Source of the DNA: Selaginella moellendorffii | Lineage: Eukaryota > Plantae > Lycopodiophyta | Direction: 5' to 3' | DNA: 64,000 bases | NCBI RefSeq assembly: GCF_000143415.4 | Contig: NW_003314283.1 | Span: forward strand, 1,863,228 to 1,927,227 | Shown: piece by piece, positions 3,134-62,436 of the stretch | Layout of the letters: every line of letters starts with the position of its first letter | Numbering within the stretch: position 1 is the first letter of the stretch | Translations under genes and position numbers: made by a program | Notes under the pieces: generated by a model | What the model was told of the DNA's origin: nothing | Databases searched by the model: none | Seen by the model: only the letters and a program-made list of their open reading frames with translations

Positions 3134-3540
3134 GATGGCATGTATTTATTTTAAAATGTAACTTATTATGGCATGGGGTTCCATGCCATTGTATTAATAT
3201 TAAAAGACAATTCTTTGAGAGGATTTGCATTATACTAGAAGTGTTACAGCATGTTATTGGAAGTCTACGAAGTTGTTTTATTAATAAGGGGAAAGTAAAG
3301 ATTGAATGGGGACTTGGGCTCCACCTAGACTCGGAGCAACTGAGCCAATATTAAAAGGATGGAAAGAAATTGGACGACGATGACAAAGAGAAGAGAGAGG
3401 TGAAGCAGTGGCAGGGGGAGGAGAAGTGATTGAGTAGACATTTCCTTGTTTAAAATAAAATGGCATGTGCCTCAATGCAGTTGAATTTTGTTATATTTAT
3501 ATACTATATAAAGGTTTGGAAACCTTATTTTACAAGTGGG

Positions 3541-20807: not shown

Positions 20808-21040
20808 TGTTATGATCCGGCGCAAAAAGACAAAGATCTAGTTGCCCTAGACTATGTTACGCCACCTCTTGAGGTTCCTCACCACCCAACCACCCCCGAG
20901 CTACCTCAAAAGCTCCACTGCACCGCCGCTCCATTGTGAGCCCTAGGGTAGGTTAAGTCCCTTACCCTAACATGCCTTAATATACCCTTGAGCCTCCCTT
21001 TGACCGATGTTGACCATGTAGTCAAAGCTGGCACCTAACA
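20808..21040 (-). repeat. Ty3 LTR-A (233 bp)
   Basis: TG..CA ends; preceded by PPT GGGGGGAAGAAT; homologous to 38688-38920, 40503-40751, 47964-48196. Confidence 0.9.
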
Positions 21041-23028: not shown

Positions 23029-24024
23029 TGTAAGCAACCAAAGGGAACGACTCTAGAGATGATCCATAGGGGTTCAAATATAAAGGGAAAGGGCCCATGA
23101 ATAAGAGTGCACCCCCTTTTCCAATCGGTCAAGGGTCTTGGGATAGTTGGAGTTAAGCGTCCTTGGGTTTGAATAGTACTGGGCTGGGTGACCTCCCGGG
23201 AAGTCCAAACTCAGGAGCTTACATTTGGTATCAGAGGGGTCTCGGGTCCGACTCTGTTGGTTGGCTAAGGGAATCACACCACATGTTGATTGACATCTGG
23301 CTGGTCCAGTTTGCTCCCGCTGGGCTCGACCTGAGGGGTAGGGTGTCAAGAGAGCGAGGCTCTCGGGAGAGCTGCGGCTCTCAGCTTCCGTTCACGAGGG
23401 CATGAACTTGCAGGGAAGCGTGGTGGATTGTAAGCAACCAAAGGGAACGATTCGAGAGACGATCCATTGGGGTTCAAATATAGAGGGAAAGGGCCCATGA
23501 ACAATAGTGCACCCCTTTTTCCAATCGGTTAAGGGTCTTGGGATATTTGGGGTTAAGCGTCCTTGGGTTTGAATAGTACTGGGCTGGGTGACCTCCCGGG
23601 AAGTCCAAATTCAGGAGTTTACATTTGGTATCAGAGAGGTCTCGGGTCCGACTCTGTTGGTTGGCTTAGGGGAATCGCACCACATGTTGATTGACATCTG
23701 GCTGGTCCAATTTGCTCCCACTGGGCTCGACCCGAGGGGTAGGGTGTCAAAAGAGCGAGGCTCTCGGGAGAGCTGCGGCTCTCAGCTTCCGTTCACGAGG
23801 GCGTGAACTTGCAGGGAAGCGTGGTGGATTGTAAGCAACCAAAGGGAACGACTCTAGAGATGATCTATAGGGGTTCAAATATAGAGGGAAAGGGCCCATG
23901 AATAAGAGTGCACCCCCTTTTCCAATCGGTTAAGGGTCTTGGGATAGTTGGGGTTAAGCGTCCTTGGGTGTGAATAGTACTGGGTTGGGTGACCTCCCGG
24001 GAAGTCCAAACTCAGGAGCTTACA
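23029..24024 (+). mobile_element. Cassandra-type TRIM tandem array (LTR-int-LTR-int-LTR)
   Basis: Three ~195-bp LTRs (23029-23223, 23429-23623, 23830-24024), TGTAAG..TTACA; PBS TGGTATCAGAG; period ~400 bp; TSD TCAAC on both sides; LTRs carry a 5S rRNA internal segment. Confidence 0.9.
23151..23206 (+). promoter_or_regulatory. 5S rRNA-derived Pol III type-1 promoter segment (box A-IE-box C) in LTR; repeated at ~23551-23606 and ~23952-24007
   Basis: AGTTAAGCGTCCTTGGG..GAATAGTACTGGGCTGGGTGACCTCCCGGGAAGTCC vs plant 5S AGTTAAGCGTGCTTGGGCGAGAGTAGTACTAGGATGGGTGACCTCCTGGGAAGTCC. Confidence 0.85.
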
Positions 24025-34777: not shown

Positions 34778-34814
34778 TTAGAGCCTCAGCTTTTTCCTAT
34801 TCGGTTCCATATAG

Positions 34815-34857
<43 letters not shown>

Positions 34858-36550
34858 CATCATCATCCTCTTTCTCTTCCACTTTGATTTGCTTAGCCTG
34901 TGGAAGTCCCAGAAGATATTTGTCATGCTCTTGCAGCATCCGCAGCCCTTCCCCAACACCCAGTGACCAGTTGACACCTTCATGGTTGATGAAACTGGGA
35001 TACAACGACCCAGGCAAGCCTTCCTCCTTGGCCCAGTCGAAATCTATGAAACGCACCTCAAGCTGCCCATTCGTCATCTTCACCATGACATTGCTGTCCC
35101 GCATGTCACCATGAACGCCATAAGTCGTTCCACCCTTCCACTTCCGCACTTCAACCTTGTGTGCCTTTGCCAGATTGGAAACAACTTCGTCTCTGAGGTT
35201 ATCCGCCTCCGGGAGGCCATACAAGAGCTTCCAACCGTCTTCTTCCGGGAGCCATTCCATCCTCACTTCAAGCCAGCCTCCCCCAACCTGTTTTAAGGAG
35301 AGAAGCTTTGGCGCAAGTCCTGCCTCACCCCACGCCCTATGAACATCAGCCCCGTAGTCCTGCTGACAATACTTGATGACACAATCTTCTCCAGGCTTCT
35401 TCAGAATGTAGACCCGCTTGTGCTCACATGCCAGATCCACCCTGACCCCCGGCTTCACTGCTTCACGATGCAGCAGCCCTGGAATCCTCCTCCTAAACAG
35501 CTCACGCCTCTTGGAGGACGGTCCTTTCTTGCAATTTCGATCGCCCCAATTCCCGTAGAAAGTTATCAGCCTTGCGACTGCAGCTTTGATTGCCATGCAA
35601 GTCCTCACACCATCCATCGCTAGCGACACATCATGTCCGTGGAGCAGAGCGAGATAAGCGGACGCCAATGGCTGATAGCAAATCTTGTCCTTTTTCTCAC
35701 CACCATCACCTGAATATTCAAAGTAAAAGTATATGAAAACCGCATGAATGGAATGCTCACCTGCTGGCAACGTGATAACCCCTCCAACTAAGAGCAGCTG
35801 ACCAATGTGTTGAACGATGAGAGCTGGTAAGCAGGTGTCAGACATAAGCGCCTTCACACCCCTCCGTGCTGCGTTCCAGTTGAGCTCGTAGTTGGTGACA
35901 GCCTGCATCAGTGGTTCAGTGTGGCTCGTCGATGTTCCTCGCTTCACTTCTTTAAGTAGCACGAGAGCATCGTGAAGAGGATCCCAAGTCCAAAGATCTG
36001 TCGTGTGCTTATTACAAGAACCTGTGTACATCTCGTCGACAACGTTCACCTCGAGGTACCCCCGCCATATTTGCCGCAGTTCGGTCCTCAGGTCGCTCTC
36101 GTGGTCGTAGAAAGTGGAGCAGGCAGTTACCAAGTCATTGAAGTGCATGTAGTCGGCCATGGTGGGATCAGGCAATTCTCCCCTCAAGTCGCTGATAAAA
36201 CGTCCAAAGACTTTGTGCATCAGCTGTAACGGTAATGGGGGTACCGCAGTGGCAGGCATGAAGCTGAGAACCTGCGGATCTGGCACCATCTGTCTTGCCA
36301 TGACAACGTTGTAGCCCTGGCTTGAAGGAGAGCAACACGGATTTGACAAACTTGTATTGCCAATGTATGTGTAATCCCCATCAGGGAGAAGTTCATCAGG
36401 GGCAAGGAAGATCTTGCCACTAGAGGAATACACACATGGGGGGCTTTCGTTGCATTCCCCGAACTTACGGCCTAGAACCTGCAGAATCGCTCCAAGCGTA
36501 CAGCCGCTGCCGAATTCGAGCGCCTTCCCTTTGCAAGTGATTGTCGCCAT
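34778..36550 (-). CDS. Crinkler/RHS-type protein: N-terminal Ubl-like header, PD-(D/E)xK REase-like domain, protein kinase-like domain, acidic tail, NLS
   Basis: Open frame from ATG 36550; probable 51-nt in-frame intron 35710-35760; PLQLMHKVFGRF, TD..EVK..Q REase-like motifs; VIKY, GLAPKL, VHGDMRDSNVMV, IDFDWA kinase motifs; C-terminal RKKLRL. Confidence 0.75.
34814..34868 (-). repeat. (GAT)n microsatellite encoding poly-Asp tail
   Basis: TCA repeat run on + strand. Confidence 0.9.
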
Positions 36551-37116
36551 GACTGCCCTAAACCTAATTGTGCGGTGGTGATTAAAAGGAATATGCCTCA
36601 ACGTTTCTTTTCGTCACCTAATCAGTCAACTATGGTATAAAGGTTTTCACAAAAAAAAAGAAAATATTTTGTGATGGCTATCCATAGTGGTTTATAAAAA
36701 CAAAGTTCATTAGAACAAAAGCAAAGTTCATCGTTGTGACTGCCAAGGTGGAGCTGTCGACCTGAATTGCCAGGGAGCTGGTACTCTGTACTAGGAAGGA
36801 GGTGCTAAAAGTACTTCCTTTCCTTCAACCTCGTGGATTAAAATAATTTCCAGCTTTGTAAAAGGTTGGAAACACTGGAAGTGCACCAGAAAACATGATG
36901 TACTTCCAGTTTTTTGCAAAAACCCATATTAATAAACCCTAGACTATGGCTTCTTCTTTCATGGCAAGATGGGTGCAGGTTTGAGTGCAGCGACCCGGGC
37001 ATCTGGATCACAGCCTCCTTGAAGTAGCATCTTCCCGAACAGCTCCAGAGCCATTCTAGCGTCCCCACCTCATGGCAGTATGGCTACATGTTAGGCACCA
37101 GGTCAGGATAATAGGA

Positions 37117-38613
37117 CCACTTGTGTATCTTTTCACACAGAAGGAGTTGAACACTAGGCAAACTCGTTGGATGGTCAAACTCATGAAGTTTGGGGAGTTT
37201 CCTATTGAGCATCGTCCGGGAAAATCAAATGTGGTGGCGGATGCTTTATTTCGTGTTCGTCATGTGACGATGTTACGAACACGATTTTGTCATTAGTTGA
37301 GTAAGGTGGTCAGCGAGTTTGGGCAGTTGGTTGAGCATGCTCAGGCTCAGGATGCTGAGGTGGCCTCTTTGCGAGACCAGATGGACGCTCCTTTCTCATT
37401 GGTGGATGGGATTTTCTACTACAATGGCCGTGTCTATTTGCCACGGGTGGATGCGTTAATTACTCAAGTTTTATTCCACTATCATGATCGTCCAGAGGCC
37501 GGTCATTTTGGGGGGAAGAAGACGTATGAGTTGATTAAGCGCAACTTTTATTGGAGGAATATGAAGGCTGATATCCTCAAGTGTTGTAAATCATGCGAGC
37601 TTTGTCAGCGGGTTAAGGTGCCACGGGAGAAGCCGGGGGGACTTTTGCAACCTTTACCTATTCCTCAGAGCCGTTGGTGTAGTATCTCTATGGACTTCAT
37701 CACTTGTTTGCCACGAACACAGAGGCAAAAGGAGCAAGTATGGGTCATAGTAGATCGGTTGACGAAGTATGTGCGGTTGTTGGCTCTTCGGAAGACTGTC
37801 ACTGCCTCAGACTTGGCTGCGGTTTACTTGGAGAAGGTTTTTCCTGATTTTGGTTTGCCGGAGGACATCATTAGTGATCGAGATTCAAAGTTCACCAGTG
37901 GATTTTGGAAAAGCTTTGCAAAGGCTATGCAAGTGACTTTGAAACTCTCAAGTGGAGATCATCCTCAGACGGATGGGCAAACTGAGCGTGTGAATCAGGT
38001 GGTGGAGGATATGCTACGTTGTAGCATTGGTCAAAGGCAAGGACAGTGGGATTTATATCTTCCGTTGGTGCAATTTGCTTACAACAATAGCCAACACAGT
38101 GGAACCAAGCTAAGTCCTTACTTTGCGATGTTTGGAAGGCATCCTCGAACAGTGGTGGAGTTGGGATTGCATTTGAGTAAGGACGTTCAAGAAAAGCTTG
38201 ATTCCAAGGCAACTGATCTGGCCACAGAACTTGATGAGATTCTGGTGGTATGCAAACGGAATTTGCAAGCAGCTCAGGATAGAGCGGAGAAGTTTGCTAA
38301 TGAGCATCGCCAATTCCGGGAATATAAGGTGGGTGATCTCGTCTTCGTGTGAGTGATCTTTCCGTCAAGTGAGCGGCGGAACACCTTGGTGCCTTTACGG
38401 ATAGGGAAGAGTGATAAACTCTCCCATCGATATGCTGGTCCATATGAAGTGCTGGAGCGCATTGGTAAAGCGGCTTATCGGGTGCGGCTGCCAGCTGGGG
38501 TGAAAATTCATCCGGTATTTTATGTCAGCCAGTTGAAAGGTGTACTATCTCGGAGTGACGGGCCCAATGCCTCCTTGATGTATACGGCTGTGGAAGATGG
38601 ACCAGGAGCTTGA
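37117..38613 (+). pseudogene. Ty3 RNase H end + integrase (copy 1)
   Basis: GHFGG..CELC zinc finger, SMDF, SDRD, DGQTE, GPY; stops at ~37294 and ~38350. Confidence 0.9.
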
Positions 38614-38687
38614 GCAGGATTCCCCAGAACGGGTGATCACCGGTACAACTCGTCCTTGGGACAAGGACTTTGTTGGGGGGGAAGAAT

Positions 38688-38920
38688 TGTTAGGCGCCAG
38701 CTTTGACTACGTGGTCAACGTCGGTCAAAGGGAGGCTCAAGGGTATATTAAGGCATGTTAGGGTAAGGGACTTAACCTACCCTAGGGCTCACAGTGGAGC
38801 GGCGGCGCAGTGGAGCTTTTGAGGTAGCTCGGGGGTGGTTGGGTGGTGAGGAACCTCAAGAGGTGGCGTAGCATAGTCTAGGGCAACGAGATCTTTGTCT
38901 TTTTGCGCCGGATCATAACA
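38688..38920 (+). repeat. Ty3 LTR-A
   Basis: TGTTAGG...CATAACA after PPT; followed directly by mid-pol sequence with no PBS. Confidence 0.9.
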
Positions 38921-40428
38921 CAGATCACAAACCACTTGTGTATCTTTTCACACAGAAGGAGTTGAACACTAGGCAAGCTCGTTGGATGGTCAAACTCATG
39001 GAGTTTGGGGAGTTTCCTATTGAGCATCGTCCGGGAAAATCAAATGTGGTGGCGGATGCTTTATCTCATGTTCGTCATGTGACGATGTTACGAACACGAT
39101 TTTGTCATCATTTGAGTAAGGTGGTCAGCGAGTTTGGGCAGTTGGTTGAGCATGCTCAGGCTCAGGATGCTGAGGTGGCCTCTTTGCGAGACCAAATGGA
39201 AGCTCCTTTCTCATTGGTGGATGGGATTCTCTACTACAAGGGCCGTGTCTATTTGCCACGGGTGGATGCATTAATTACTCAAGTTTTATTCCACTATCAT
39301 GATCGTCTAGAGGCCGGTTATTTTGGGGGGAAGAAGACGTATGAGTTGATTAAGCGCAACTTTTATTGGAGGAATATGAAGGCTGATATCCTCAAGTATT
39401 GTAAATCATGCGAGCTTTGTTAGCGGGTTAAAGTGCCACGGGAGAAGCCGGGGGGACTTTTGCAACCTTTACCTATTCCTCAGAGCCGTTGGTGTAGTAT
39501 CTCTATGGACTTCATCACTTGTTTGCCACGAACACAGAAGCAAAAGGAGTAAGTATGGGTCATAGTAGATCGGTTGATGAAGTATGTGCGGTTGTTGGCT
39601 CTTCGGAAGACTGTCACTGCCTCAGACTTGGCTGCAGTTTACTTGGAGAAGGTTTTTCCTAATTTTGGTTTGCCGGAGGACATCATTAGTGATCGAGATT
39701 CAAAGTTCACCAGTGGATTTTGGAAAAGCTTTGCAAAGGCTATGCAAGTGACTTTGAAACTCTCAAGTGGAGATCATCCTCAGACGGATGGGCAAACTAA
39801 GCATGTGAATCAGGTGGTGGAGGATATGCTACGTTGTAGCATTGGTCAAAGGCAAGGACAGTGGGATCTATATCTTCCGTTGGTGCAATTTGCTTACAAC
39901 AATAGCCAACACAGTGGAACCAAGTTAAGTCCTTACTTTGCGATGTTTGGAAGGCATCCTCGAACAGCGGTGGAGTTGGGATTGCATTTGAGTAAGGACG
40001 TTCAAGAAAAGCTTGATTCCGAGGCAACTGATCTGGCCACAGAACTTGATGAGATTCTGGTGGTATGCAAACGGAATTTGCAAGCAGCTCAGGATAGAGC
40101 GGAGAAGTTTGCTAATGAGCATCGCCAATTCCGGGAATATAAGGTGGGTGATCTCGTCTTCGTGCGAGTGATCTTTCCGTCAAGTGAGCGGCGGAACACC
40201 TTGGTGCCTTTACGGATAGGGAAGAGTGATAAACTCTCCCATCGATATGCTGGTCCATATGAAGTGCTGGAGCGCATTGGTAAAGCGGCTTATCGGGTGC
40301 GGCTGTCGGCTGGGGTGAAAATTCATCCGGTATTTTATGTCAGCCAGTTGAAAGGTGTACTATCTCGGAGTGACAGGCCCAATGCCTCCTTGATGTATAC
40401 GGCTGTGGAAGATGGACCAGGAGCTTGA
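38921..40428 (+). pseudogene. Ty3 RNase H end + integrase (copy 2)
   Basis: Near-identical to 37117-38613; two stops. Confidence 0.9.
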
Positions 40429-40502
40429 GCAGGATTCCCCAGAAAGGGTGATCACCGGTACAACTCGTCCTTGGGACAAGGACTTTGTTGGGGGGGAAGA
40501 AT

Positions 40503-40751
40503 TGTTGGGCGCCAGCTTTGACTACGTGGTCAACGTTGGTCAAAGGGAGGCTCAAGGGTATATTAAGGCATATTAGGGTAAGGGACTTAACCTACCCTAG
40601 GGCTCACAGTGGAGCGGCGGCGCAGTGGAGCGGCGGCGCAGTGGAGCTTTTGAGGTAGCTCGGGGGTGGTTGGGTGGTGAGGAACCTCAAGAGGTGGCAT
40701 AGCATAGTCTAGGGCAACGAGATCTTTGTCTTTTTGCGCCGGATCATAACA
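40503..40751 (+). repeat. Ty3 LTR-A with 16-bp internal duplication, followed by tRNA-iMet PBS (40753-40763)
   Basis: GTGGAGCGGCGGCGCA duplicated; TGGTATCAGAG. Confidence 0.9.
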
Positions 40752-40774
40752 TTGGTATCAGAGGATTGGTTGCG

Positions 40775-43437
40775 ATGGCCGACCAAGCTGAACGCTGGAA
40801 TCCTATCATCGATGGTGGTGCCGACGATGGTGCCGACGTAGCTGCGGAGATTTGGACCATTCAAGATGTGGTTCATGAGCTGCGAGCCCTTAATAAAAAT
40901 CAGCAAGAGATGCAAGACGAGATGCATGGCATGATGGATACCATGCGTGGGCGTGTTGAGGCACTCGAGGCTGGACGGGGTAGCGCTCCAAGTAAGCCTT
41001 CTTTGGTAGATCGACTCAAGATTCCAACCTTTTCCAGTGATGGTGGTGTGGATGAGTGTCTCGCTTGGCTAGCCAATGTGAAGAAGTTCTTGGCTGCTAG
41101 AGGAACTCCAGATGCAGAGGCTTTAATGGCTATTCCGATGGTTTTGCGTGATGCGGGTCTTCGATGGTGGAATTGGCTTGAGGAGTCCCGTGTTGCGGAT
41201 AAGAAATCACCAGTATCTACCATGGATGAGTTTGAGGCTGCTTTTCGTTTACGTTTTGCCCCTCATTACGACGTGGAGAATGCTCGTACAGAACTTCGCC
41301 ATTTCCAGCAAGGGAAAATGACGCTTGGGGATTATATTGAGAAGCTTACTCGCTTGATTAGTCGTGTTCCAACGAAGGATCCAGATCAGAACAAGTCCTA
41401 CTTCATTGATGGCCTACATAGTGAGAGCATGCGGCAACACTTGCGTCATTCTCAGCCTACAAAGAGTTTGGAGGAGCTCTTTGATGCGGCTCGTCGACTT
41501 GATAATGACAAGCACAAGTCTCACAAGCGTTCGCGGAGTCCTTCTGTCGAGAATCGTCGTGATGATCGCCATGGACACAAGGATGGGAACAAGCATCACA
41601 AGTTGAAGTCGGTGGTGACTACCTCGGATGCAAAGGGGTCCAAGAAGCAGAAGTTCTTTGTGAAGAATTATAGACAGGGTTGTCATCATTGCGGCGAACT
41701 TGGACACTACAAGGCTGATTGTCCGCAGTTGAAGAACAAGCAGCAGGACAAGAAGAATGGCCAATCTTCTTCTCACGGTAAGTCCGATACTAAAAAGTTG
41801 CAAACTTTGCAGCGTGAGGAGGAGGAGAACGACCATTCCGGTCGGAGGAAGCGACTTTCGATCGTTGCTCGTCAGCTCAACTGTGTGTGGAACAAGATGG
41901 AGCTTGAGGATACGCGTGAATCAGCTTTAATGCTGGAGGGCTCCGTGGCGATCCAGTGCGGATTTTACTGGATAGTGGGAGCGATAACAACTTTGTTTCG
42001 GCAAAGTTTGTTGCGGAGCATCGCCTGAACACATGTGGAGTTCTTCCATACACAGTGGAAGGTGCAGCTACCTCTGCTCAGCATTTCGATGCTTGTGTTG
42101 AGGGGCTGGAAGTGTTGGTTGGCAAAACCACACTTGTGGAGACTTTTTATGTCGCGGATATCCATCGTGTGGATCTCATTCTTGGGATGCCATGGTTGGT
42201 GAAGGTGGATCCAGAGATAAAGTGGAGCATTAAGCGTATCTCGCTAGAGTATGGTGGCGTTAAAGATGTGTGGTTTGGCGAGGGCGTTCAACCACCAGTT
42301 GTTATGCTCTCTGCTACATCTTTGAAGCGGGCTTGTCGTAATGGAAAAGCACTTTCAAGTTACTTGCTGTTTGTTCGTGACTTGGGCGACCAAGGCACAT
42401 GTGGGGGAGAAGCAGCAGTACGGGATGTACTCGACGAGTTTTCTGATGTTTTTCCATCTGAACTTCCTCATGGATTGCCTCCATTACGAGGTGTGGAGCA
42501 TGGGATTACATTGGAGCCGGGGACACGGCCAATTTACCGGCATCCATTTCGGTTAAGTTATGCGGAGGAGCAAGAAGTTCAGCGACAAGTCAAGGAGTTA
42601 CTTGAGTTTGGATTTATTCAGCCAAGTAAGTCTCTGTTTGGTGCTCCAGTCTTGCTTGTGAAGAAGAAGGACGGTTCAATGCGGATGTGTATTGACTACC
42701 ATGCTTTAAACAAGAAGACAGTGAAGGACAAGATGCCGATGCCACGTGTGGATGATATCCTAGACAAGCTTGGTGAAGCACGAGTGTTTACCAAGATTGA
42801 TCTGAGGAGTGGATATCATCAGATTGCAATGGATGATGCATCTATCTCTAAGACGGCATTCAACACAAGCTTCGGACATTTTGAGTTTACCATTATGCCG
42901 TTTGGTTTGACGAATGCACCAGCCACATTTACTCGGTTGATGACGGAGGTATTTGGGCGTTATCTTCACGAGTTTGTGGAGATTTTCTTGGACGATATTC
43001 TTGTTTTTAGCAAGAATATGGAGGAGCATAGGGTGCATTTGCGCAAGGTTCTTTTGTTACTTCGAGACAGCAAACTTTATGCGAAGAAGAGCAAATGTGA
43101 ATTTGCAAAGTCGGAGGTGGAATATCTAGGCCATATTGTGACATCTAAGGGTGTCAAGACGGATCCAAGGAAGGTGGCTGTGGTGGAAAACTGGCCTACA
43201 TCGACTACAGTGGCCGAGTTGTGCAGTTTTCTTGGTATGGCTAGTTACTACCAACGTTTCCAGCATAAGTTTGCAGAGGTGGCTATTCTGTTGACGCGGT
43301 TGTTACGCAAGAATGTGCCATTCGAGTGGAAGACGCCACAAGAGGAGAGTTTTGTGGCGCTGAAACGATTGTTGATCGAGGCTCCAGTGCTTCGCATTGC
43401 TGATCCATCGAAACCTTACGAGGTGACATGTGACTAA
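40775..43437 (+). pseudogene. Ty3 gag-PR-RT, 3' truncated at start of RNase H, 4-bp deletion frameshift near 41941
   Basis: CHHCGELGHYKADC knuckle, LLDSGS, FLDD. The copy at 48220 shows gag-PR are normally one frame. Confidence 0.92.
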
Positions 43438-43477
43438 GTATGATCGCGGACGATCATTCCCTGACGAGGGGGAGGAT

Positions 43478-43871
43478 TGTTAGGCACCAGGTCAGGATAA
43501 TAGGATAAGGAAAGGGCCCTGCAATCAAGTGATCACCCCTTTAGCCAGTTGGCTTAGGGTGTAAGGGATAGGATCCTAACAATGGTATCGGAGCCCAGTT
43601 CGATTCTCGTGGCTGACGAGTGGGGCAAGAATATTCTGAAGGAATATTCAACATGGTGGATCTAGAGGGAGAACCAAGGTTTGGTAGACCCTAAGAGAAG
43701 GACCATGGTGACCGGAGGGTGGCCTAAGTATGATCGCGGACGATCATTCCCTGACGAGGGGGAGGATTGTTAGGCACCAGGTCAGGATAATAGGATAAGG
43801 AAAGGGCCCTGCAATCAAGTGATCACCCCTTTAGCCAGTTGGCTTAGGGTGTAAGGGATAGGATCCTAACA
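43478..43871 (+). mobile_element. Young TRIM-B unit (104-bp identical LTRs, 186-bp internal)
   Basis: LTRs 43478-43581 and 43768-43871 identical by eye; PBS TGGTATCGGAGC; PPT GAGGGGGAGGAT. Confidence 0.92.
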
Positions 43872-44543
43872 CTACATAAGGGCCAAGCAAGCAAAAAAAA
43901 GGGTGTCATGGCAGCCATGGCTATGTGCCAGCAGTGCCAGATGCCACAGCCAAACTGCTATGGCCTAGTGCTCCTTGGTTGTCCTATCCTCACCATAGAA
44001 ATGCTCCTAATTCGCTGATCCCTGTTCAGCCCCCAATCCTAAATGCTCTCATGAATTATTTTGTAAACTATGCTTGTCTGCTAACACTTAAGTGATACAA
44101 GCTGCTCATATTTTAATGCTAGAGTAAAGAAAATACCAAGTCTTGGATTTTATAGCAAATTATTAATAATTAAAGATCATTAAATTTTGAGATAAATTGA
44201 ACTCGTAGTTAATAATTACTGATGATTTGTATAAATAAACTGTAATAATTCAAAACCATAACTAAATAAAATAAATTATTAATATAATATAATCTGAATA
44301 ACACTTTTTATAGCAAATAATACTTTAAAACATATTTTTCAGCTAATTATATATAAAACCATTGAAAAAAATTGTAAAAATAGTATTTACTAAATAATAT
44401 TCTATTTAATCTTATTTTAGGGATGATACCGAGAGTGTCTTGGAAGACATGGTAAACTATCATCTAATAAATATTGAGGGAGTAGACTCAATATCTCAAG
44501 GGATCCCAACATTAGCGAATACAAGCTAACAACATATGTCATA

Positions 44544-44770
44544 TGTTAAGAGTCATTTTATATATGACGAACACAAGAGTGATATAAGATGGGTGTGTAT
44601 GGACTTAGGGCATGTTATCATTTTGGATCTTCTCCTCTTCCTGGTTTCTCTTCCTCCTGTCCTTTTCCTACTTCTCCATGTGTAGCATATGTGATCATTG
44701 TAGTGCATGTGGTCTTTACCTTGTATTTTATAGTGATTTACCATAGAATAACCACAAAGTGGTACCTAAA
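44544..44770 (+). mobile_element. Possible decayed LTR + PBS remnant
   Basis: TGTTAAG...AACCACA followed by AAGTGGTACCTAAACC (degenerate iMet PBS). Confidence 0.3.
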
Positions 44771-45002
44771 CCATCAATGTGCCACATGCCACATCCCACG
44801 TGTCCATAGACCTGAGTTTTAGGGCATTGGGCCACTGCATGAAGGAATAGAGCCAAACTCCCAAGTATGGAGCTAAGGAGTGACGAAACTAGAGCACAGA
44901 GCAACTCTCGACCATACAACCCAAGAAGCATAGGGACAAAAGCATGGAATGATTTGAAATAGTCCTAGAGCATCCAACATCCTATAGCACACAAAACGGA
45001 GT

Positions 45003-45020
45003 GGTTTAGGGTTTAAGGTT
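45003..45020 (+). repeat. Short telomere-like tract at junction
   Basis: GGTTTAGGGTTTAAGGTT. Confidence 0.5.
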
Positions 45021-45022
45021 CC

Positions 45023-45792
45023 CCCAGTATCCTTCCGGTGCTCGCGGCCTACCACACCCCAGGGAGATAAGCACTTTGGTCTTTCACCCCATGTGTCCAT
45101 GTCCGAGCCGGAACCCGAGTTCGAGATGGTGCCCGAATCCGACTCTGACATGGTGCACACAGGGTGGAGCCCGGCAGCCCGCGCATGCACTGGAAGTCCA
45201 GCTGGGGGTGTGGAGCTGGGCACCCGAGGTCTGACCTCGGGCTGCCCAACACTCGCATTCCCCACTATCCTTTCGGTGTTCGCGGCCTACCATGCCCCAG
45301 GGAGACAAGCACTTTGGGCTTTCACCCCCACGTGTCCATGTCCGAGCTGGAACCCGAGTCCGAGATGGAGCCCGAGTCCGACTCCGACATGGTGCATGCG
45401 GGGTGGAGCCGGGCAGCCCGTGCATGCACTGGAAGTCTAGCTGGGGGTGTGGAGCCAGGCACCCGAGGCCTGACCTCGAGCTGCCCAACACTCGCATCCC
45501 CCACTATCCTTCCGGTGCTCGTGGCCTACCACACCCCAGGGAGACAAGTGCTTTGGGCTTTCACCCCCACATGTCCATGTCCGAGCCGGAACCCGAGTCC
45601 GAGATGGAGCCCGAGTCCGACTCCGACATGGTGCATGCGGGGTGGAGCCCGGCAGCCCGCGCATGCACTAGAAGTCCAACTGGGGGTGTGGAGCCGAGAC
45701 ACCCGAGGGCTAGCCTCAGCTGCCCAACACTCACATCCCCCACTATCCTTCCAGTGCTCGCAGCCTACCACACCTCAGGGAGACAAGCACTT
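45023..45792. repeat. ~239-bp tandem repeat (3.2 copies), probably rDNA intergenic-spacer subrepeats
   Basis: Unit starts at 45023, 45261, 45500, 45739; lies ~110 bp downstream of the 25S 3' end on the minus strand. Confidence 0.8.
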
Positions 45793-45904
45793 CACCCCAG
45801 GGAGTCAACCACTTCACCCCACACGCTCAAGCCTGAGCCCAAGCCCATGTTGCCCGGGTCCATCGGGCTACTGTACCCTTTGGTTTTATTCCTTCTGTGG
45901 GTGG

Positions 45905-46501
45905 GACAAATCGGTGGGACAGAGGGATGAACCTCAGCGGATTGTAGCAGCAAGGCTACTTTGCCACTTACAGTACCCCGTCCCCTATTTAAGTCTTCTG
46001 CAAAGGATTTATCTCCTCGACCGTTCGAAATTGGATTTCCAAGCCGCGCCCCCGGGGCAGCATCGGCCCCGAGGGACGGCACTTGCGTCATGTGTTCTCG
46101 GGGGAGCACGGGGCCCCCCTAACCGTAATCAGGTAACAGCTGAGGAGGTAGAGAGCACCGCATCTAGCACGGATTCTCACTTAGAGGCGTTCAGTCATAA
46201 TCCCATGCATGGTAGCTTCGTGCCACTGGCTTTTCAACCAAGCGCAATTACCAATTGTGCGAATCAACGATTCCTCTCGTACTAAGTTGAATTACTATTG
46301 CGGCACAGCTCATTAGTAGGGTAAAACGAACCTATCTCACGACAGTCTAAACCTAGCTCACGTTCCCTATTGGTGGGTGAACAATCCAACGCTTGGTGAA
46401 TTCTGCTTCACAATGATAGGAACAGCCGACATCGAAGGATCAAAAAGCAACGTCGCTATGAACGCTTGGCTGCCACAAGCCAGTTATCCCTGTGGTAACT
46501 T
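45905..46501 (-). rRNA. Orphan, mutated 3' fragment of 25S/26S rRNA gene
   Basis: Reverse-complement matches such as CCACAAGCCAGTTATCCCTGTGGTAACT, CCGACATCGAAGGATCAAAAAGCAACGTCGCTATGAACGCTTGG, TAGAGGCGTTCAGTCATAATCC; scattered transitions relative to the consensus. Confidence 0.93.
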
Positions 46502-47262
46502 CCAGACAGCCTTTTTAGCAGCCAAACACGCATGCCTTGAACGACTAAACCTGCAAGAAGATCAGCACCATCGTTGGTGGAAGGTGGATGAATCGATCAT
46601 ATGCACCCTCCCCAACATGGCATCGGGACTAGTCTTCGAGGCAGGACAGGCTGGACGCTTGTACCCCATCGTTACCCCCGAGTACGAGGACCTCCCCGAC
46701 ATGAGCAGAGCTAAACCGATCAGAGTGATTCAAATGGAGAAAAAAACTGCCAACGTTGATCCTTTGATCCCAGAAAACCAATATGCTCGCCTCTACTGGT
46801 TCCGCCAACAAACCTTGGACGAACTCAAGTGGGATCCCGCAGAGTGGCATTGGAGGGGAACCACGTGCAAGGACTTCTTCCAGTACGAGATCAAGCCAGG
46901 CCGCAAACTGATCAGGGTGCCGACTCGATCCTCCCTCATCCGGAAAGCAAAGGCCCAACAGATCCATTCCAGGAACCACTCACACAGCATCAACAAGATC
47001 TGGAAGGGGCGCTGGTCAGCTAAGAACCGCTACTTAATGTGGCTGGCCCAACAAGAACGTCTCCCATCTCTGGTCACCATACATCTTCCGAACACAGCCT
47101 GCAAGACCTGTGGCGCCACAGAAACACAGCGACACATCTTATGGGAATGTCCGGCAGCACAGAAAGTATGGGAAGGTGCAGCAGTGGTACTAAAACGAAC
47201 GTCAACCGGAGGAGCTGCAATCACATACGAATCGGCGCTCTGGGGTAGCTTCATCTAGGGAG
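46502..47262 (+). mobile_element. L1-like LINE (family 2) ORF2 3' fragment with zf-RVT
   Basis: W..AQQERL...CKTCGATETQRHILWECPAAQKVW. Confidence 0.85.
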
Positions 47263-47963
47263 CAGATGAGAACCTTCGCAGAGGCAGGGATGAGAACCTT
47301 CGCAGAGGCAGACACCATGATCCAGCCCAACCAGACGGCCAACAACTGTGACCGAATCAGTGCCTTCTACGGAATAACCATCTCAGAACACAGGATGCGT
47401 AAATTCTAGACAGCCTTTTTAGCAGCCAAACATGCATGCCTTGAACGACTAAACCTACAAGAAGACCAATACCATCGATGGTGGCAGGTGGACGAGTCGA
47501 TCGTATGTGCCTTCCCCAACATGGCATCGGGACTCATCTTTGAGGCAGGACAGGGTGGACGCTTGTACCCCATCGTCACCCCTGAGTACGAGGACCTCCC
47601 TGATATGAGCAGAGCTAAACCGATTAGAGTGATTCAAATAGAGAAAAAAACTGCCAACGTTGATCCATGATCCCAGAAAAACAATATGCTTGCCTCTACT
47701 GGTTCCGCCAACAAACCCTAGATGAACTCAAGTGGGATCCTGCAGAGTGGCATTGGAGAGGAACCAGGTGCAAGGGCTTCTTCCAGTACGAGACCAAGCT
47801 GGGCCGAAAACTGATCAGCGTGCTAACTCGATCCTCCCTCATCCGGAAAGGAAAGGCCCAACAGATCCACTCCAGGAACCACTCACGCTGCATCAACAAG
47901 ATCTGGAAGGGGTGCTGGTCAGCTAAGAACCGCTACTTCATGTGGCTGGCCCAACAAGAACGT

Positions 47964-50062
47964 TGTTAGGCGCCAGCTTTGACTACGTGGTCAACGTCAG
48001 TCAAAGGGAGGCTCAAGGGTATATTAAGGCATGTTAGGGGAAGGGACTTAACCTACCCTAGGGCTCACAGTGGAGCGGCGGCGCAGTGGAGCTTTTGAGG
48101 TAGTTCGGGGGTGGTTGGGTGGTGAGGAACCTCAAACGGTGGCGTAGCATAGTCTAGGGCAACTAGATCTTTGTCTTTTTGCGCCGGATCATAACATTGG
48201 TATCAGAGGATTGGTTGCGATGGCCGACCAAGCTGAACGCTGGAATCCTATTGTCGATGGTGGTGCTGACGATGGTGCCGACAAAGCTGCGGAGATTTGG
48301 ACCATTCAAGATGTGGTTCATGAGCTGCGAGCCCTTAATAAAAATCAGCAAGAGATGCAAGACGAGATGCATGGCATGATGGATACCATGCGTGGGCGTG
48401 TTGAGGCACTCGAGGCTGGACGGGGTAGTGCTCCAAGTAAGCCTTCTTTGGTAGATCGACTCAAGATTCCAACCTTTTCCGGTGATGGTGGTGTGGACAA
48501 GTGTCTTGCTTGGCTAGCTAATGTGAAGAAGTTCTTGGCTGCTAGAGGAACTCCAAATGCAGAGGCTTTAGTGGCTATTCCAATGGTTTTGTGTGATGTG
48601 GGTCTTCGATGGTGGAATTGGCTTGAGGAGTCCCGTGTTGCGGATAAGAAACCACCAGTGTCTACCATGGATGAGTTTGAGGCTGCTTTCCGTTTATGTT
48701 TTGCCCCTCATTACGACGTGGAGAATGCTCGTATAGAACTTTGCCATTTCCAGCAAGGGAAAATGACACTCGGGGATTATATTGAAAAGCTTACTCGCTT
48801 GATTAGTCGTGTTCCAACAAAGGATCCAGATCAGAACAAGTCCTACTTCATTGATGGCCTACATAGTGAGAGCATGCGGCAACACTTGCGTCATTCTCAG
48901 CCTACAAAGAGTTTGGAGGAGCTCTTTGATGCAGCTCGTCGACTTGACAATGACAAGCACAAGTCTCGCAAGCGGTCACGGAGTCCTTCTGTCGAGAATC
49001 GTCGTGATGATGGCCGTGGACATAAGGATGGGAACAAGCATCACAAGTTGAAGTCAGTGGTGACTACCTCGGATGCAAAGGGGTCCAAGAAGCAGAAGTT
49101 CTTTGTGAAGAATTATAGACAGGGTTGTCATCATTGCGGCGAACTTGGACACTATAAGGCTGATTGTCCACAGTTGAAGAACAAGCAGCAGGACAAGAAG
49201 AATGGCCAATCTTCTTCTCACGGTAAGTCCGATACTAAAAAGTTGCAAACTTTGCAGCGTGAGGATGAGGAGAACGACCATTCCGGTCGGAGGAAGCGAC
49301 TTTCGATCGTTGCTCGTCAGCTCAACTGTGTGTGGAACAAGATGGAGCTCGAGGATAAGCGTGAATCAGCTTTAATGCTGGAGGGCGTGTTCCGTGGCGA
49401 TCCAGTGCGGATTTTACTGGATAGTGGGAGCGATGACAACTTTGTTTCGGCAAAGTTTGTTGCGGAGCATGGCCTGGTCACACGTGGAGTTCTTCCATAC
49501 ACAGTGGAAGGTGCAGCCACCTCTACTCAACATTTCGATGCTTGTGTCGAGGGGCTGGAAGTGTTGGTTGGCAAAACCACACTTGTGAAGACTTTTTATC
49601 TCGCGGATATCCATCGTGTGGATCTCATTCTTGGGATGCCATGGTTGGTGAAGGTGGATCCAAAGATAAAGTGGAGCATTAAGCGTATCTCGCTGGAGTA
49701 TGGTGGCGTTAAAGATGTGTGGTTTGGCGAGGGCGTTCAACCACCAGTTGTTATGCTCTCTGCTACATCTTTGAAGCGGGCTTGTCGTAATGGAAAAGCA
49801 CTTTCAAGTTACTTGCTGTTTATTCGTGACTTGGGGGAGAAGTAGTACCGGTCTACCAAACCTTGGTTCTCCCTCTAGATCCACCATGTTGAATATTCCT
49901 TTAGAATATTCTTGCCCCACTCGTCAGCCACGAGAATCGAACTGGGCTCCGATACCATTGTTAGGATCCTATCCCTTACACCCTAAGCCAACTGGCTAAA
50001 GAGGTGATCACTTGATTGCAGGGCCCTTTCCTTACCCTATTATCTTGACCTGGTGCCTAACA
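47964..50062 (+). mobile_element. Inverted Ty3/TRIM-B chimera (Ty3 LTR-PBS-gag-PR joined to reversed TRIM-B internal-PBS-LTR)
   Basis: TSD AACGT at 47959-47963 and 50063-50067; both outer ends are LTR 5' (TGTTAGGC) ends. Confidence 0.85.
48220..49845 (+). pseudogene. Ty3 gag-protease, 3' truncated
   Basis: Continuous ORF with CCHC knuckle and LLDSGS. Confidence 0.9.
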
Positions 50063-50305
50063 AACGTCTTCCTTCTCTAGCGGCCATACATCTCCCGAAC
50101 ACAGCCTGCAAGACCTGTGGCGCCATAGAAACACAGTGACACATCTTATGGGAGTGCCCGGCAGCACAGGAAGTATGGGAATGTGCAGTAGCTGTACTCA
50201 AAAGAACATCAACCGGAGGAGCTGCAATCACATACGAATCAGCACTTTGGGGTAGCTTCATCCAGGGAAAAACAAAGAATCCTGATGGTTGGAAGTGGAG
50301 ACACA

Positions 50306-50336
50306 TAGGGTTTAGGGTTTAGGGTTTAGGGTTTAG
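50306..50336 (+). repeat. Interstitial plant telomeric repeat (TTTAGGG)~4
   Basis: TAGGG(TTTAGGG)3TTTAG, perfect. Confidence 0.92.
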
Positions 50337-50985
50337 ACCAGACCTCCAACATGGGGCACAGAGCTGGGTTTCAAATGGCTGAACACGGAGGAGACCACCC
50401 GCTACCTTGGCTTCCAAGTCGGATGCCAGTATGATCAAGAACCTCAGAACCAAAAAGTAGTTACAAAACTAAGGGATCAACTCAAGTTCTGGGCGAGCAG
50501 AAAACTATCATTCTCAGCACGCTGTGTGGTGGCTAACAGCATCCTGCTTGGAGCGATATGGTTCCTGGCAGCATGCTTGGTTTGGTCCAGATTGATCGTC
50601 TCACTCGCGGCCCGCCTGGACACGCTGATCAAAGGAGGCGTGGAAGGGAAGATAGCGAAGGAGAAGGAGCAGCATAGGAAGTATGGGAAGGTGCAGCAGC
50701 GGTACTCAAACAAACAACAACCGGAGGAGCGGCAATCACATACGAATCAGCACTCTGGGGTAGCGTCATCCAGGGAAAAACAAAGAATCCTGATGCTTGG
50801 AAGTGGAGACACAACGAGGCCCCACACTTTGATCAACTCAACCAAACTCGGACACACATTAAGCATCTCTACCAGGAGCTCTTTGACGCGCTTCGGGGAT
50901 GTACACTAGCAGAGATATGGAAGGCTCGCTGTGCCAGGCTGTTCGAAGACACGGACCCCTCGGCTCGAGCAACTATCTCAAAGGT
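50337..50985 (+). mobile_element. Scrambled LINE family 2 fragments (RT C-terminus and 3' region)
   Basis: RYLGFQVG...KFWASRKLSFSARCVVANSIL; third copy of the 3' segment at ~50672-50985. Confidence 0.7.
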
Positions 50986-51345
50986 TTGGTCCAGATTGAT
51001 CGTCTCACTCGCGGCCCACCTGGACACGCTGATCAAATGAGGCGTGGAAGGGAAGATAGCGAAGGAGAAGGAGCTGTGGCCGTTTTTTAGAGAAAGAAGC
51101 AAGGCTGGAGAAGAAGAATGGTTGTGGAAGCCACCATTATGGATTTGGCAGCACATGTTCAGGAACAACAGTACGTGTAGCTCTCTGAGTCGACAGAGTT
51201 CCACACCAGGAACTTCGGAAGTTTGGAGATCAGACATCACGGGCTCGAGTGCCAATTCTACTTTGTCCCCCTCGTCCCACCCCCCCTAAAAATCTTGAAG
51301 AGCTCTTTCCCGGTTTCAAGCATGTCGAAATCGGACTCTATGGTT
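50983..51345. repeat. ~360-bp dispersed cassette (also 52210-52556; partial 50579-50671)
   Basis: Direct visual alignment: GATTGATCGTCTCACTCGCGGCCC...GTCGAAATCGGACTCTAT. Confidence 0.8.
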
Positions 51346-52556
51346 TATAGAGGATAAAATAAAAAACCCCATTGACAAAGTCAGCCATTTTTGTGGATCC
51401 ACCATGATCAAGGCACTCAGAGCAATGCCATTTGATGTATGGGATGTTTCGAGGGGCACGGCTCGTGTCAGAAGCTGCATCAGGCTAGCTTGTTGGAGTG
51501 CAGAAACGTAGCTTCAACCCAGATCCGAAAGGAGCAGCTCACCTTTGGTCGTGATTCCAAATGGATAGCGCCAAGGGTACGGCTACACTGGTATGAGGCT
51601 GTGGGACTGGCATGGTGGCACTACACTTGCACGGCCTGATGGGAGGCTGGAAACAGCAATCCCAGTTGGAGGGGATCAGTCACACAGCAGCGAGGAGAGG
51701 ACTTCCAGGCAGCAGCAGCATCACCATTACCGGAGACGGCACACTCCTCCTCAGTTCACCGCACTGTGGGATCCAGGACAGTACATCTCCAGGGGCTTCT
51801 TATATCTCTGGAAAACTGTAGGTGTCATACAGATGGAGATCAAGCAAGGGTGGTGTACCTTCACTGATCTCACGATCGACTCAAGTCCTTCACATCAGTA
51901 GATGCAATCACATGGGAGAGATGAGGCTGGGGACCATGGATAAGGCGCGAAGTTCACCACCAGTACGGATAGGGAGCACGCGTTTGCGGAGTGAGTGGCA
52001 CGGCTTTGGGCAGCACAGAACCGAACACTAGTTCCTTGATCTGATCTGCACAGAACCGAACCGAACTCTAGTTCCAAGGATCCTCCCTTCATCACAACCC
52101 CCCCATATGCTCTTTGCCAGTTTCGAGCATGTCGAAACTGGACCTCTATGGTTTTCAAGAGGATAAATATGAAAAGCCCCATTGACAAAGGCGGACTAGA
52201 TTCTGATTGATTGATCATCTCACTCGCGGCCCGCCTGGACATGCTGATCAAATGAGGCATGGAAGGGAAGATAGTGAAGGAGAAGGAGTTGTGGCCATTT
52301 TTTAGAGGAAGAAGCGAGGCTGGAGAAGAAGAATGGACGTGGAAGCCACCATTATGGATTTGGCAGCACATGTTCAGGAATGAAGGCACGTGTACCTCCC
52401 CGAGTCGACAGAGTTCCACACCAGGAACTTCGGAAGTTTTGAGATCGGACATCACAGGCTCGAGTATCAGTTCTACTTTGTCCCCCTCGTCCCACCCCCC
52501 CTAAAAATCTTGAAGAGCTCTTTCCCGGTTTCGAGCATGTCGAAATCGGACTCTAT

Positions 52557-55447: not shown

Positions 55448-55640
55448 CACTCACAAGTTTAGTCTATACATTAGTTTGGGCTGTACACTTAGGAATATTT
55501 TTATTGGAAATGGTCACTTCAAATCTGGCATAGATGGCAACATTGAGTAATTAGAGGTTATTTTTTGTATACTTAATAATGATATAGTATTTAATTAAAA
55601 AATAATTATAAGTGGTATTATTATAAATAAAATATGAAGA

Positions 55641-56063
55641 GGCATAGTATAATCTAGGGAGATTAGATCTTTGTCTTTTAGCACTGGATCTTAATATTGA
55701 TAAAGAAAAGGCCCTGTAATAAAGTGATCACCCCTTTAGCCAATTGGCTTAGGGTGTAAGTGATAGAATTCTAACATTAGTATTGGAGTAGTTCCATTTT
55801 CGTGACTGACAAATAAAGTAAGAATATTCTAAAGGGATATTTAACATGGTGGATATAAAGGGAGAACCATGGTTTGGTAGACCCTAAACAAAGGACAATG
55901 ATGACCAAAGGGTAGCCTAGGTATGATTGTGGATGATCATTCCCTAGTGAGGGAAGGATTGTTAGGCACCAAGTCAAAATAATATAATAGAAAAAAGGCC
56001 TTGCAATAAAGTAATCACTCTTTTAACCAATTGGCTTAGGGTGTAAGGGATAGAATCTTAGCA
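55641..56063 (+). mobile_element. Old TRIM-B copy preceded by a decayed Ty3 LTR-A 3' end
   Basis: 55641-55699 matches the LTR-A end (TAGATCTTTGTCTTTT..GGATC.TAA.A), then TRIM-B partial LTR, internal and LTR. Confidence 0.7.
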
Positions 56064-58103: not shown

Positions 58104-58479
58104 AAACTCAGGAGATTACATTTGGTATCGGAGCGGTCTCGGGTCCGACTCTGTTGGTTGGCTAAGGGAATCACACCACATGTTGATTGACATCTGGCTG
58201 GTCTAGTTTGCTCCCGCTGGGCTCGACCCGAGGGGTAGGGTGTCAAGAGAGCGGGGCTCTTGGGAGAGTTGCGGCTCTCAGCTTTCGTTCACGAGGGCGT
58301 GAACTTGCAGGGAAGCGTGGTGGATTGTAAGCAACCAAAGAGAACGACTTGAGAGACGATCCGTTGGGGTTCAGATATAGAGGGAAAGGGCCCATGAATA
58401 AGAGTGCACCCCCTATTCCAATTGGTTAAGGGTCTTGGGATATTTGGGGTTAAGCGTCTTTGGGTGTGAATAGTACTGG
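58104..58479 (+). mobile_element. Partial Cassandra-type TRIM (LTR end, PBS, internal, truncated LTR)
   Basis: Matches a unit of the 23029-24024 array; breaks within the 5S segment. Confidence 0.85.
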
Positions 58480-61119: not shown

Positions 61120-62436
61120 CACTCCAGGACTTGGGACTTGCTAGCCCCGAGAATGGCATCCATGCCACTCAACATTTGCACTTGGTCCAAGTGCTCCACA
61201 TGTCCGATCCCATTATCGACACTCAAAGGTACCACCGACATGGCAGCCTGTTACGCTAAGGCCCTGCCCAATCACCTTTGCCACACTGGTAGTCCAATAC
61301 CACTTGCATCACAGTCTTGGCTCTCCAAGACTAGGCAAACCATCCATGAGTGGTCATCTCAGATCCACTCCTTAGCATCCTTAGGATGCCCACCGACAAA
61401 GGGACTAGCCTTCCCCAATATCCCTCTGTCAGTCCCCACTAAGTTCCTTTCTGCCCTTGGCCGTGTTTGCCAACACTGCCACTGGATCGAGGCCCACAGG
61501 CCCAACCACTAAGTCCCACGGTCCCCTGGGACTTCCTCACCACATGACTGTGTCCTTGGTCAGTACCCTCGAGGACTGCTCCTCTTCCTTTCCACAGNNN
61601 NNNNNNNNNNNNNNNNNNNNNNNNNNNNNNNNNNNNNNNNNNNNNNNNNNNNNNNNNNNNNNNNNNNNNNNNNNNNNNNNNNNNNNNNNNNNNNNNNNNN
61701 NNNNNNNNNNNNNNNNNNNNNNNNNNNNNNNNNNNNNNNNNNNNNNNNNNNNNNNNNNNNNNNNNNNNNNNNNNNNNNNNNNNNNNNNNNNNNNNNNNNN
61801 NNNNNNNNNNNNNNNNNNNNNNNNNNNNNNNNNNNNNNNNNNNNNNNNNNNNNNNNNNNNNNNNNNNNNNNNNNNNNNNNNNNNNNNNNNNNNNNNNNNN
61901 NNNNNNNNNNNNNNNNNNNNNNNNNNNNNNNNNNNNNNNNNNNNNNNNNNNNNNNNNNNNNNNNNNNNNNNNNNNNNNNNNNNNNNNNNNNNNNGCCCCC
62001 CCCCCCCCCCCCCCTGGGGGACGATCGCTTTGGGCTTTCACCCAACTGCCTATATTAGTATTCGGACTCGGACTCGGACTCGGACTCGGACTCGGACTGG
62101 GTCTCGGTCCCGGATTCGGACTCGGACTCGGTCTCGGTCTCGGTCTAGGTCCTAGAGTCGGTCTTGGACTTGATCTTCGACTTGGTCCCATCCGATGAAC
62201 TCTTTGTCATTTTGGTCATGCTTTCCTTTAGCCTACGACACCTCGGCGAGTTGGTTCCTTACATCTTGCATCACAGTCTTGGCTCTCCAAGACTAGGCAA
62301 TCCCTCCGTGAGTGGTCATCTCAGATCCACTCCTTAGCATCCTTAGGATGCCCACCGGCAAGGGGAATAGCCTTCCCCAATATCCCTCTGTCAGTCTCCA
62401 CTAAGTCCCTTTTTGCCCCTGGCCGGGTTTGCCAAT
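61120..62436 (-). mobile_element. LTR-C fragments spanning an assembly gap
   Basis: Reverse complement of the 16400-17410 region; CGGACT hexamer array 62062-62150. Confidence 0.7.
61598..61994. other. Assembly gap
   Basis: Run of N. Confidence 1.

Follow-up and report, generated by a model that had tools for sequence, protein, structure and literature searches.

At one locus in the genome of the lycophyte Selaginella moellendorffii, a retrotransposon insert of 2,099 bp raises the question of how two facing long terminal repeats (LTRs), taken from two different elements, came to be integrated at a single target site. The insert occupies positions 47964-50062 of a 64,000-nucleotide stretch of contig NW_003314283.1 (NCBI RefSeq assembly GCF_000143415.4, positions 1,863,228 to 1,927,227 of the forward strand), here called the window, whose numbering is used throughout. 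It consists of the 5' end of a Ty3/gypsy element followed by the reversed 5' end of a terminal-repeat retrotransposon in miniature (TRIM). The initial annotation, made from the sequence alone, had read it as the work of an integrase complex (intasome) that used one end from each of two different complementary DNAs (cDNAs), the free inner ends being joined by repair. The core of that reading, that two different elements each supplied a U3 (unique 3') end to the integration, explains the locus best and is probably correct; the observation itself is real and lies far beyond chance.

Both tips of the insert are the exact first base of their own LTR (TG...CA), as in other copies, and are of integrase type. 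On the left, 47964 corresponds to the base at which the sister LTRs start, and in the sister copies the same first base comes after the 3' polypurine tract (PPT). On the right, 49959-50062 is the reverse complement of the TRIM LTR, and its terminal base is that of the other TRIM ends flanked by target site duplications (TSDs) in the window (37089, 20273 and 26554). The primer binding site (PBS) lies inward of the LTR in both parts and the LTRs face each other, so that both outward tips are U3 starts, that is, like ends; the orientation of both LTR homologies is unambiguous at 97-98% identity. The initial annotation had identified both ends in this way, with a TRIM LTR of 102 bp whose actual length is 104 bp.

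The insert is flanked by a perfect 5-bp duplication, AACGT, which is the usual TSD length of the family and was already recognized on both sides. The host sequence is a fragment of a long interspersed nuclear element (LINE), of which an older direct duplicate, about 90% identical, lies 903 bp upstream (46495-47261). Once the insert and one copy of the TSD are taken out, the flanks give a 200-nt gapless alignment to this paralogue that crosses the target site, where AACGT occurs once and where two repeat families of the window (D5 and D10) overlap by exactly 5 bases; the clean rejoining of the LINE target, claimed earlier, is thus confirmed. An inspection of the empty site had also been suggested. 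Among the public sequencing runs, all of which were available as short Logan contigs, a 238-nt contig in run X4, a different sample from the runs that best represent the window, joins 47958 to 50063; on the left it has 184 nt free of mismatches, and a 5-letter overlap fits either side. Because the in-window LINE paralogue differs by about 9%, this contig is not that paralogue; judged from its sequence, it represents the locus in an empty form, either as an allele or haplotype or as a very recent duplication. The existence of this near-identical empty form implies that, relative to it, the insert arrived as a single unit. Two U3 tips of different elements, one perfect 5-bp TSD and a clean empty site, the pattern left by concerted integration, therefore argue for a single integrase-mediated event.

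Table 1. Coordinates of the insert, its parts, its target site and the other Ty3/gypsy and TRIM units of the window.
Feature	Positions	Strand	Remarks
Ty3/TRIM composite with two U3 tips (the insert)	47964-50062		TSD AACGT
TSD, left copy, AACGT	47959-47963	.	In LINE fragment; 5 letters fit both sides of the X4 empty-site contig
Ty3/gypsy 5' LTR, 233 bp	47964-48196	+	Starts TGTTAGG, ends CATAACA; outward tip is U3 start; BLAST
PBS TGGTATCAGAGG	48198-48209	+	One spacer base past Ty3 LTR; same motif after the LTR at 40751
Open reading frame for gag, zinc knuckle and aspartic protease, 541 aa, intact	48220-49845	+	Pfam; lone stop at end
G-rich polypurine tract GGGGGAGAAG, candidate central PPT	49833-49842	+	Same tract in sister copies at 42403 and 24839
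Inner junction, Ty3 (plus sense) to TRIM (minus sense)	49849-49851	.	Direct join, 2-3 nt of shared G, no filler
First 109 nt past TRIM 5' LTR, including PBS TGGTATCGGAGC at 49946-49957	49850-49958	-	99% identity to 43580-43690
TRIM LTR, 104 bp, reversed	49959-50062	-	Tip 50062 is U3 start; 97% identity to both LTRs of TRIM 43478-43871
TSD, right copy, AACGT	50063-50067	.	Sequence view; LINE paralogue alignment; X4 contig
Paralogous empty site, one AACGT	47056-47060	.	Neighbouring copy of the same LINE fragment (46495-47261)
TRIM	20273-26695		TSD GATTG
Ty3/TRIM composite, nested in TRIM 20273-26695	20518-26554		TSD GTATG/ATATG
Permuted Ty3/TRIM composite	37089-43871		TSD CTACA
More divergent TRIM	about 55701-56063

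The Ty3/gypsy part, which runs from 47964 to about 49848, just short of the TRIM edge at 49850, carries a 5' LTR, a PBS and an intact gag-protease open reading frame (ORF). By BLAST, its LTR is 97% identical to 38688-38920, 95% identical to 21040-20808 (minus strand) and 90% identical, with a 16-bp indel, to 40503-40751. The 541-aa product matches the Pfam families Retrotrans_gag (4e-11), zf-CCHC (4.5e-5) and RVP_2 (6.4e-9), and its stop codon (TAG, 49843-49845) arose by a C-to-T difference just ahead of the inner junction, where the sister copies (40503-43433, and 26461-24029 on the minus strand) run on into reverse transcriptase and RNase H. These two domains lie at 41956-43437 and integrase lies ahead of the 3' LTR (37297-38352 and 39574-40428), and the resulting order of gag, protease, reverse transcriptase, RNase H and integrase places the family in Ty3/gypsy. 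Compared with a canonical copy, the insert has a single Ty3 LTR, its other end being the reversed TRIM LTR; it has a PBS and neither 3' PPT nor 3' LTR; and its gene set is gag and protease alone. An exact-protein look-up of the gag-protease ORF with two choices of start returned no record, a word-based protein search with the 541-aa product gave no match at E<=1e-20 among candidates of comparable length, and Rfam and tRNA scans of 43300-50400 found nothing within the insert.

On the minus strand, the TRIM part (49850-50062) reads as the 104-bp LTR, one spacer base, the PBS and 97 further bases of internal sequence down to 49850, and it matches the complete 394-bp TRIM at 43478-43871 at 209 of 214 bases. 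This reference copy has the features of its class, namely two 104-bp LTRs, a PBS and a PPT within 394 bp. Against the definition of a TRIM (two short LTRs, PBS, PPT, no ORF, less than ~1 kb), the insert's own TRIM piece is a fragment. The 3' ends that the two parts would present to integrase, CTGGCGCCTAACA from the Ty3 U3 and CTGGTGCCTAACA from the TRIM U3, are identical at 12 of 13 bases, a likeness that exceeds that of U3 to U5 (unique 5') tips within either element. The U5 tips of the two families are likewise near-identical (GGATCATAACA and GGATCCTAACA), and their PBSs differ at 2 of 12 positions. Given these matching tips and PBSs, the TRIM is a plausible non-autonomous partner of the Ty3/gypsy family. 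The arms of the insert come from different elements and the inverted repeat is limited to ~13 terminal bases, unlike the arms of a foldback or copy-back product.

The sequence across the inner junction is TACCGGTCTACC in the insert, against TACGGGATG in the Ty3 sister copies and TTAGGGTCTACC in the reversed reference TRIM. The BLAST match to Ty3 halts at 49838, and alignment of the three copies by eye extends the homology to about 49848. Two stretches present in its sisters are missing from the insert, 18 bp between two TGGGGGA repeats and a single CAG triplet; after these losses it reads GAAGTAGTAC, matching GAAGCAGCAGTAC of the sister copies, which continue with GGGATG. The meeting of inner ends near 49840 with a small deletion, as first annotated, is thereby replaced by a direct GG/GGG join between Ty3 sequence and TRIM sequence. 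An 11-bp filler at this point was considered and rejected, closer alignment showing it to be Ty3 sequence, as was an inner junction made by integrase itself (autointegration), there being no LTR tip at either inner end. Both inner ends are truncated and meet directly, and no second TSD is present, in contrast to a nested insertion.

The Ty3 piece stops 6-9 nt past the G-rich tract that precedes the junction, a tract that resembles the family's 3' PPT GGGGGGGAAGAA (38675). Runs of five G with at least three further purines occur at only two internal sites in ~4.4 kb of the element, the protease/reverse transcriptase boundary (42403, 24839 and 49833) and the integrase region (37510), and the chance of a random breakpoint falling within 20 nt downstream of either tract is p about 0.009, a post hoc figure. 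The second tract, GGGGGGAAGAAGA at 37510-37522, is near-identical to the 3' PPT and is a candidate plus-strand priming site. A similar coincidence on the TRIM side, with three tracts in 186 nt (p about 0.06), was not used.

We think it likely that the insert records one integrase-mediated event, in which two PPT-primed 5' cDNA segments, from the Ty3/gypsy element and its TRIM partner, were joined head to head. The Ty3 segment would comprise LTR, PBS, gag and protease, halting just past the internal PPT-like tract, and the TRIM segment would comprise LTR, PBS and a further 97 nt (109 nt past the LTR). On the top strand, the insert is Ty3 in plus sense from the U3 start to nucleotide ~1885 and then TRIM in minus sense to the complement of its U3 start; the bottom strand mirrors this. 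Either strand would start as a PPT-primed plus strand, with the exact U3 5' end, and finish as sequence copied from the plus strand of the other element. In the textbook scheme of reverse transcription, which is followed here for the strand reasoning, genomic RNA begins at R (the repeat region). Since the TRIM part includes U3, its template would have been plus-strand DNA and not genomic RNA, and since it extends 97 nt past the PBS in authentic internal sequence, that cDNA would have been past the second strand transfer. We infer that both cDNAs had passed this step and co-existed, most simply in one virus-like particle into which the two RNAs had been packaged together. Integrase would then have handled the near-identical U3 tips like any ordinary pair of ends, and the 5-bp duplication would have resulted. 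From its position beside the breakpoint, the internal tract may have acted as a central PPT, in which case the Ty3 piece would derive from a cDNA whose plus strand was made discontinuously, being the upstream segment of that strand.

The joining of the two segments can be placed before or after integration. In the first route, the truncated 5' segments would be joined beforehand, either by annealing of their 3' ends at the 3-nt GGG/CCC overlap with mutual extension or by end joining of truncated cDNAs, and the fused linear DNA would be integrated through its two U3 tips. In the second, one intasome would synapse the U3 tips of unjoined Ty3/gypsy and TRIM cDNAs from the same particle and transfer them to positions 5 bp apart, and microhomology-mediated end joining would seal the resulting chromosome break at the two truncated inner ends. 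The junction microhomology of 2-3 nt fits either order, and the two routes give the same product. Of the scheme in the initial annotation, then, the two U3 tips, the two elements and the single event stand, and its joining by repair of two cDNAs held in one intasome is matched in outcome by head-to-head fusion before integration. True bimolecular integration in vivo, the second route, is a possibility that we hold only tentatively. On either route the insert is a dead, one-off product of aberrant retrotransposition and not a new mobile element.

Several points weigh against this account. The evidence rests on a single locus. The filled junctions (47963/47964, ~49850 and 50062/50063) are bridged by no contig listed from the public runs, whose contigs continue at 49838 and 49850 as normal Ty3 and TRIM sequence. 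The coincidence of the breakpoint with a polypurine tract is post hoc, and the sequences TGTTAGG and TAACA common to the tips leave room for a route by deletion. No published natural chromosomal insertion with two U3 tips or inverted LTRs and a TSD was found in the literature covered, which left out most subscription journals.

The best surviving alternative is a history of nested insertions followed by two deletions, one of them at the microhomology shared by the tips. For example, a complete reversed TRIM would enter the LINE, duplicating AACGT, and a Ty3 element would insert in forward orientation into the 3' part of the TRIM; a deletion of less than ~180 bp between TGTTAGG tips would then place the Ty3 LTR start at the flank, and a second of more than 3 kb would extend from past the protease to TRIM internal nucleotide 109. 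In the mirror version, Ty3 would come first with the reversed TRIM nested inside it, and the deletion would fall at the common TAACA. The ingredients for this are present, as the 7 nt TGTTAGG occur both at the start of the Ty3 LTR and at the end of the reversed TRIM LTR, the U5 and U3 tips share the 5 nt TAACA, real nesting occurs in the window (the composite at 20518-26554 inside the TRIM at 20273-26695), and the inner junction has the 2-3 nt of microhomology usual in illegitimate deletions; the statement in the initial annotation that nesting plus deletion cannot produce this geometry was therefore too strong. Four events would be needed, however, two insertions and two deletions, one of the latter exact to the base, throughout which the TSD stayed perfect, the 541-aa ORF stayed open and the flank stayed identical over 184 nt to an existing empty form. 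Neither a leftover of the inner element's TSD nor any of the deleted parts remains, and a deletion endpoint would have to fall beside the PPT-like tract by chance alone, with the post hoc probability given above. The still-open gag-protease ORF favours a young history of few steps, and nesting with deletions is unlikely.

Less probable is an artefact of assembly or cloning, by which the inner junction or the whole filled form would be absent from the plant. The region is highly repetitive, only the empty form is bridged in the public runs among the contigs listed, and the assembly has a gap elsewhere in the window (N at 61598-61994). Assemblers join at shared sequence, however, and cannot create two exact LTR tips flanked by duplicated 5-bp copies of a target site that the paralogue carries uninterrupted. 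The inner junction links non-homologous sequences with merely 2-3 bases in common; that gap is the sole one, with no N within 46000-52000; and even if the interior had been collapsed, the outer U3 tips and the TSD would still stand.

We give slightly less credit still to an origin lacking a two-ended integrase reaction, in which cDNA was captured at a chromosome break by end joining, or one end was inserted by integrase and the other by host enzymes. Retroviruses do provide aberrant integrations in which additional viral DNA, oriented either way, is attached to truncated ends (PMC5041404), but truncated ends and irregular host junctions would be expected here, where complete tips and a normal 5-bp duplication are found. 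Last, a later inversion within an ordinary PBS-type chimera, which the initial annotation had named as grounds for refutation and in whose favour same-orientation Ty3/TRIM chimeras do exist nearby, is dismissed, as it requires one breakpoint exactly at the boundary of element and flank, and flipping the LTR, PBS and 109 nt back leaves the original right end in TRIM internal sequence, which is no integrase end.

The insert is one of five units of the Ty3 and TRIM families in the window; the TSD was read at four of these, and the three besides that of the insert are all 5 bp long. Mixtures of Ty3 and TRIM sequence inserted as units make up three of the five, so mixed cDNAs of this pair are recurrent, as would be expected if both RNAs were packaged together (general background in PMC6894440 and PMC1950507). 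The composite at 37089-43871 opens with 27 nt from the start of a TRIM LTR, followed by two tandem units of the 3' part of Ty3 integrase plus LTR; PBS, gag, protease and reverse transcriptase then run to 43433, beyond which come 44 nt from the end of the TRIM internal region and then a complete TRIM. A direct repeat of 148 nt, 100% identical, precedes both TRIM LTRs of this composite. The TRIM at 20273-26695 is interrupted in its internal region by the reversed composite at 20518-26554, the order of which is TRIM LTR, PBS, full Ty3 genes, Ty3 LTR, PBS, TRIM internal sequence and TRIM LTR; the head-to-head TRIM LTRs at 26453-26554 and 26594-26695 are due to this nesting. In the minus-strand Ty3 copy, reverse transcriptase and RNase H are broken by a ~400-bp tandem repeat at 23029-24025 (2.5 copies, 93-97% identical), of which an extra copy lies at 58104-58479. 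Within 55636-56063, the more divergent TRIM is ~80% identical to that at 43478 and is preceded by 67 nt that are 79% identical to the end of the Ty3 LTR and by a degenerate PBS (D15); from this resemblance, it may be another old Ty3/TRIM junction.

Other features of the window lie outside these units. A fragment of eukaryotic 28S ribosomal RNA (rRNA) is present on the minus strand at 45908-46553 (Rfam LSU_rRNA_eukarya, 448 bits, model positions 2389-3399, with an internal loss), adjoined at 45020-45806 by three to four tandem repeats of 239 bp. By their sequence and order, the two look like a displaced piece of ribosomal DNA with intergenic-spacer subrepeats, directly upstream of the LINE fragments. 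Between two LINE-derived segments, an interstitial plant-type telomere repeat (TTTAGGG, ~3.5 copies) lies at 50309-50336, where depth in the public runs is very high, as expected of telomere repeats. A long open ORF on the minus strand at 34778-36601 (607 aa from TTG, 590 aa from ATG) had no Pfam match at E<=0.01, and an exact look-up of the 590-aa protein returned no record.

To our knowledge, like-end pairing by integrases is known solely from test-tube assays. In such assays Ty1 integrase carries out concerted integration of like ends, with U3 donors preferred (PMC8487063). The insert resembles this two-donor reaction in that like LTR tips (here with 12 of 13 bases the same) were joined to target strands 5 bp apart; it differs from the oligonucleotide reaction in being a natural chromosomal insertion, fixed or polymorphic, with tips from two families and joined inner ends. 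Ty1 integrase in yeast will also insert any fragment with TG..CA ends in vivo, with a 5-bp TSD (PMC2939329), and here too proper tips would have been sufficient whatever lies between them, although the substrate was natural and not a polymerase chain reaction fragment supplied under experimental over-expression. The complex LTR retrotransposons of the Triticeae, colinear products of template switching (Sabot and Schulman 2007, PMC1950507), share with the insert the fusion of two parents during replication and insertion as a unit with one TSD, and the neighbouring composites at 37089-43871 and 20518-26554 are of that kind. Those elements have one orientation and U3 and U5 tips, whereas the insert has an inverted second part and two U3 tips and so departs from the template-switch pattern. 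In aberrant retroviral integrations (PMC5041404), extra viral DNA lies, in one or the other orientation, against a truncated viral piece, much as truncated element DNA is joined to more element DNA here; there, host enzymes insert one end, leaving irregular junctions and a rearranged host sequence, in contrast to the two host junctions of the insert, which are of normal integrase type. Finally, Ty1, HIV and the Arabidopsis element EVADE make plus strands in segments that finish at central PPTs, and the DNA of plant virus-like particles is reported to include extension products with such ends (PMC7197481). The Ty3 piece, which begins at the U3 start and stops shortly after an internal polypurine tract, is like these intermediates of Ty1 and of EVADE particle DNA. 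Unlike the circles of autointegration associated with central PPTs, the insert is chromosomal and its inner junction lacks an LTR tip; the tract here is a candidate central PPT.

Being of natural origin, bounded by two U3 tips and apparently still polymorphic, the insert indicates that no strict pairing of U3 with U5 is enforced in the cell. Were the bimolecular route true, the genome itself would bear direct evidence that an LTR-retrotransposon integrase can synapse like ends in a living cell, that a TRIM and its autonomous helper were physically together, and that plus-strand synthesis in a plant gypsy element was discontinuous at an internal PPT. Inserts with like ends may be a recurrent source of dead units with inverted ends, which LTR-finding software would miss or mislabel. 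The breakpoint beside the PPT-like tract offers a testable central-PPT candidate in an early-diverging vascular plant, and the insert ties a gene-less TRIM, through near-identical tips and PBSs and through fused cDNAs, to a specific autonomous Ty3/gypsy helper, a link that is usually just guessed.

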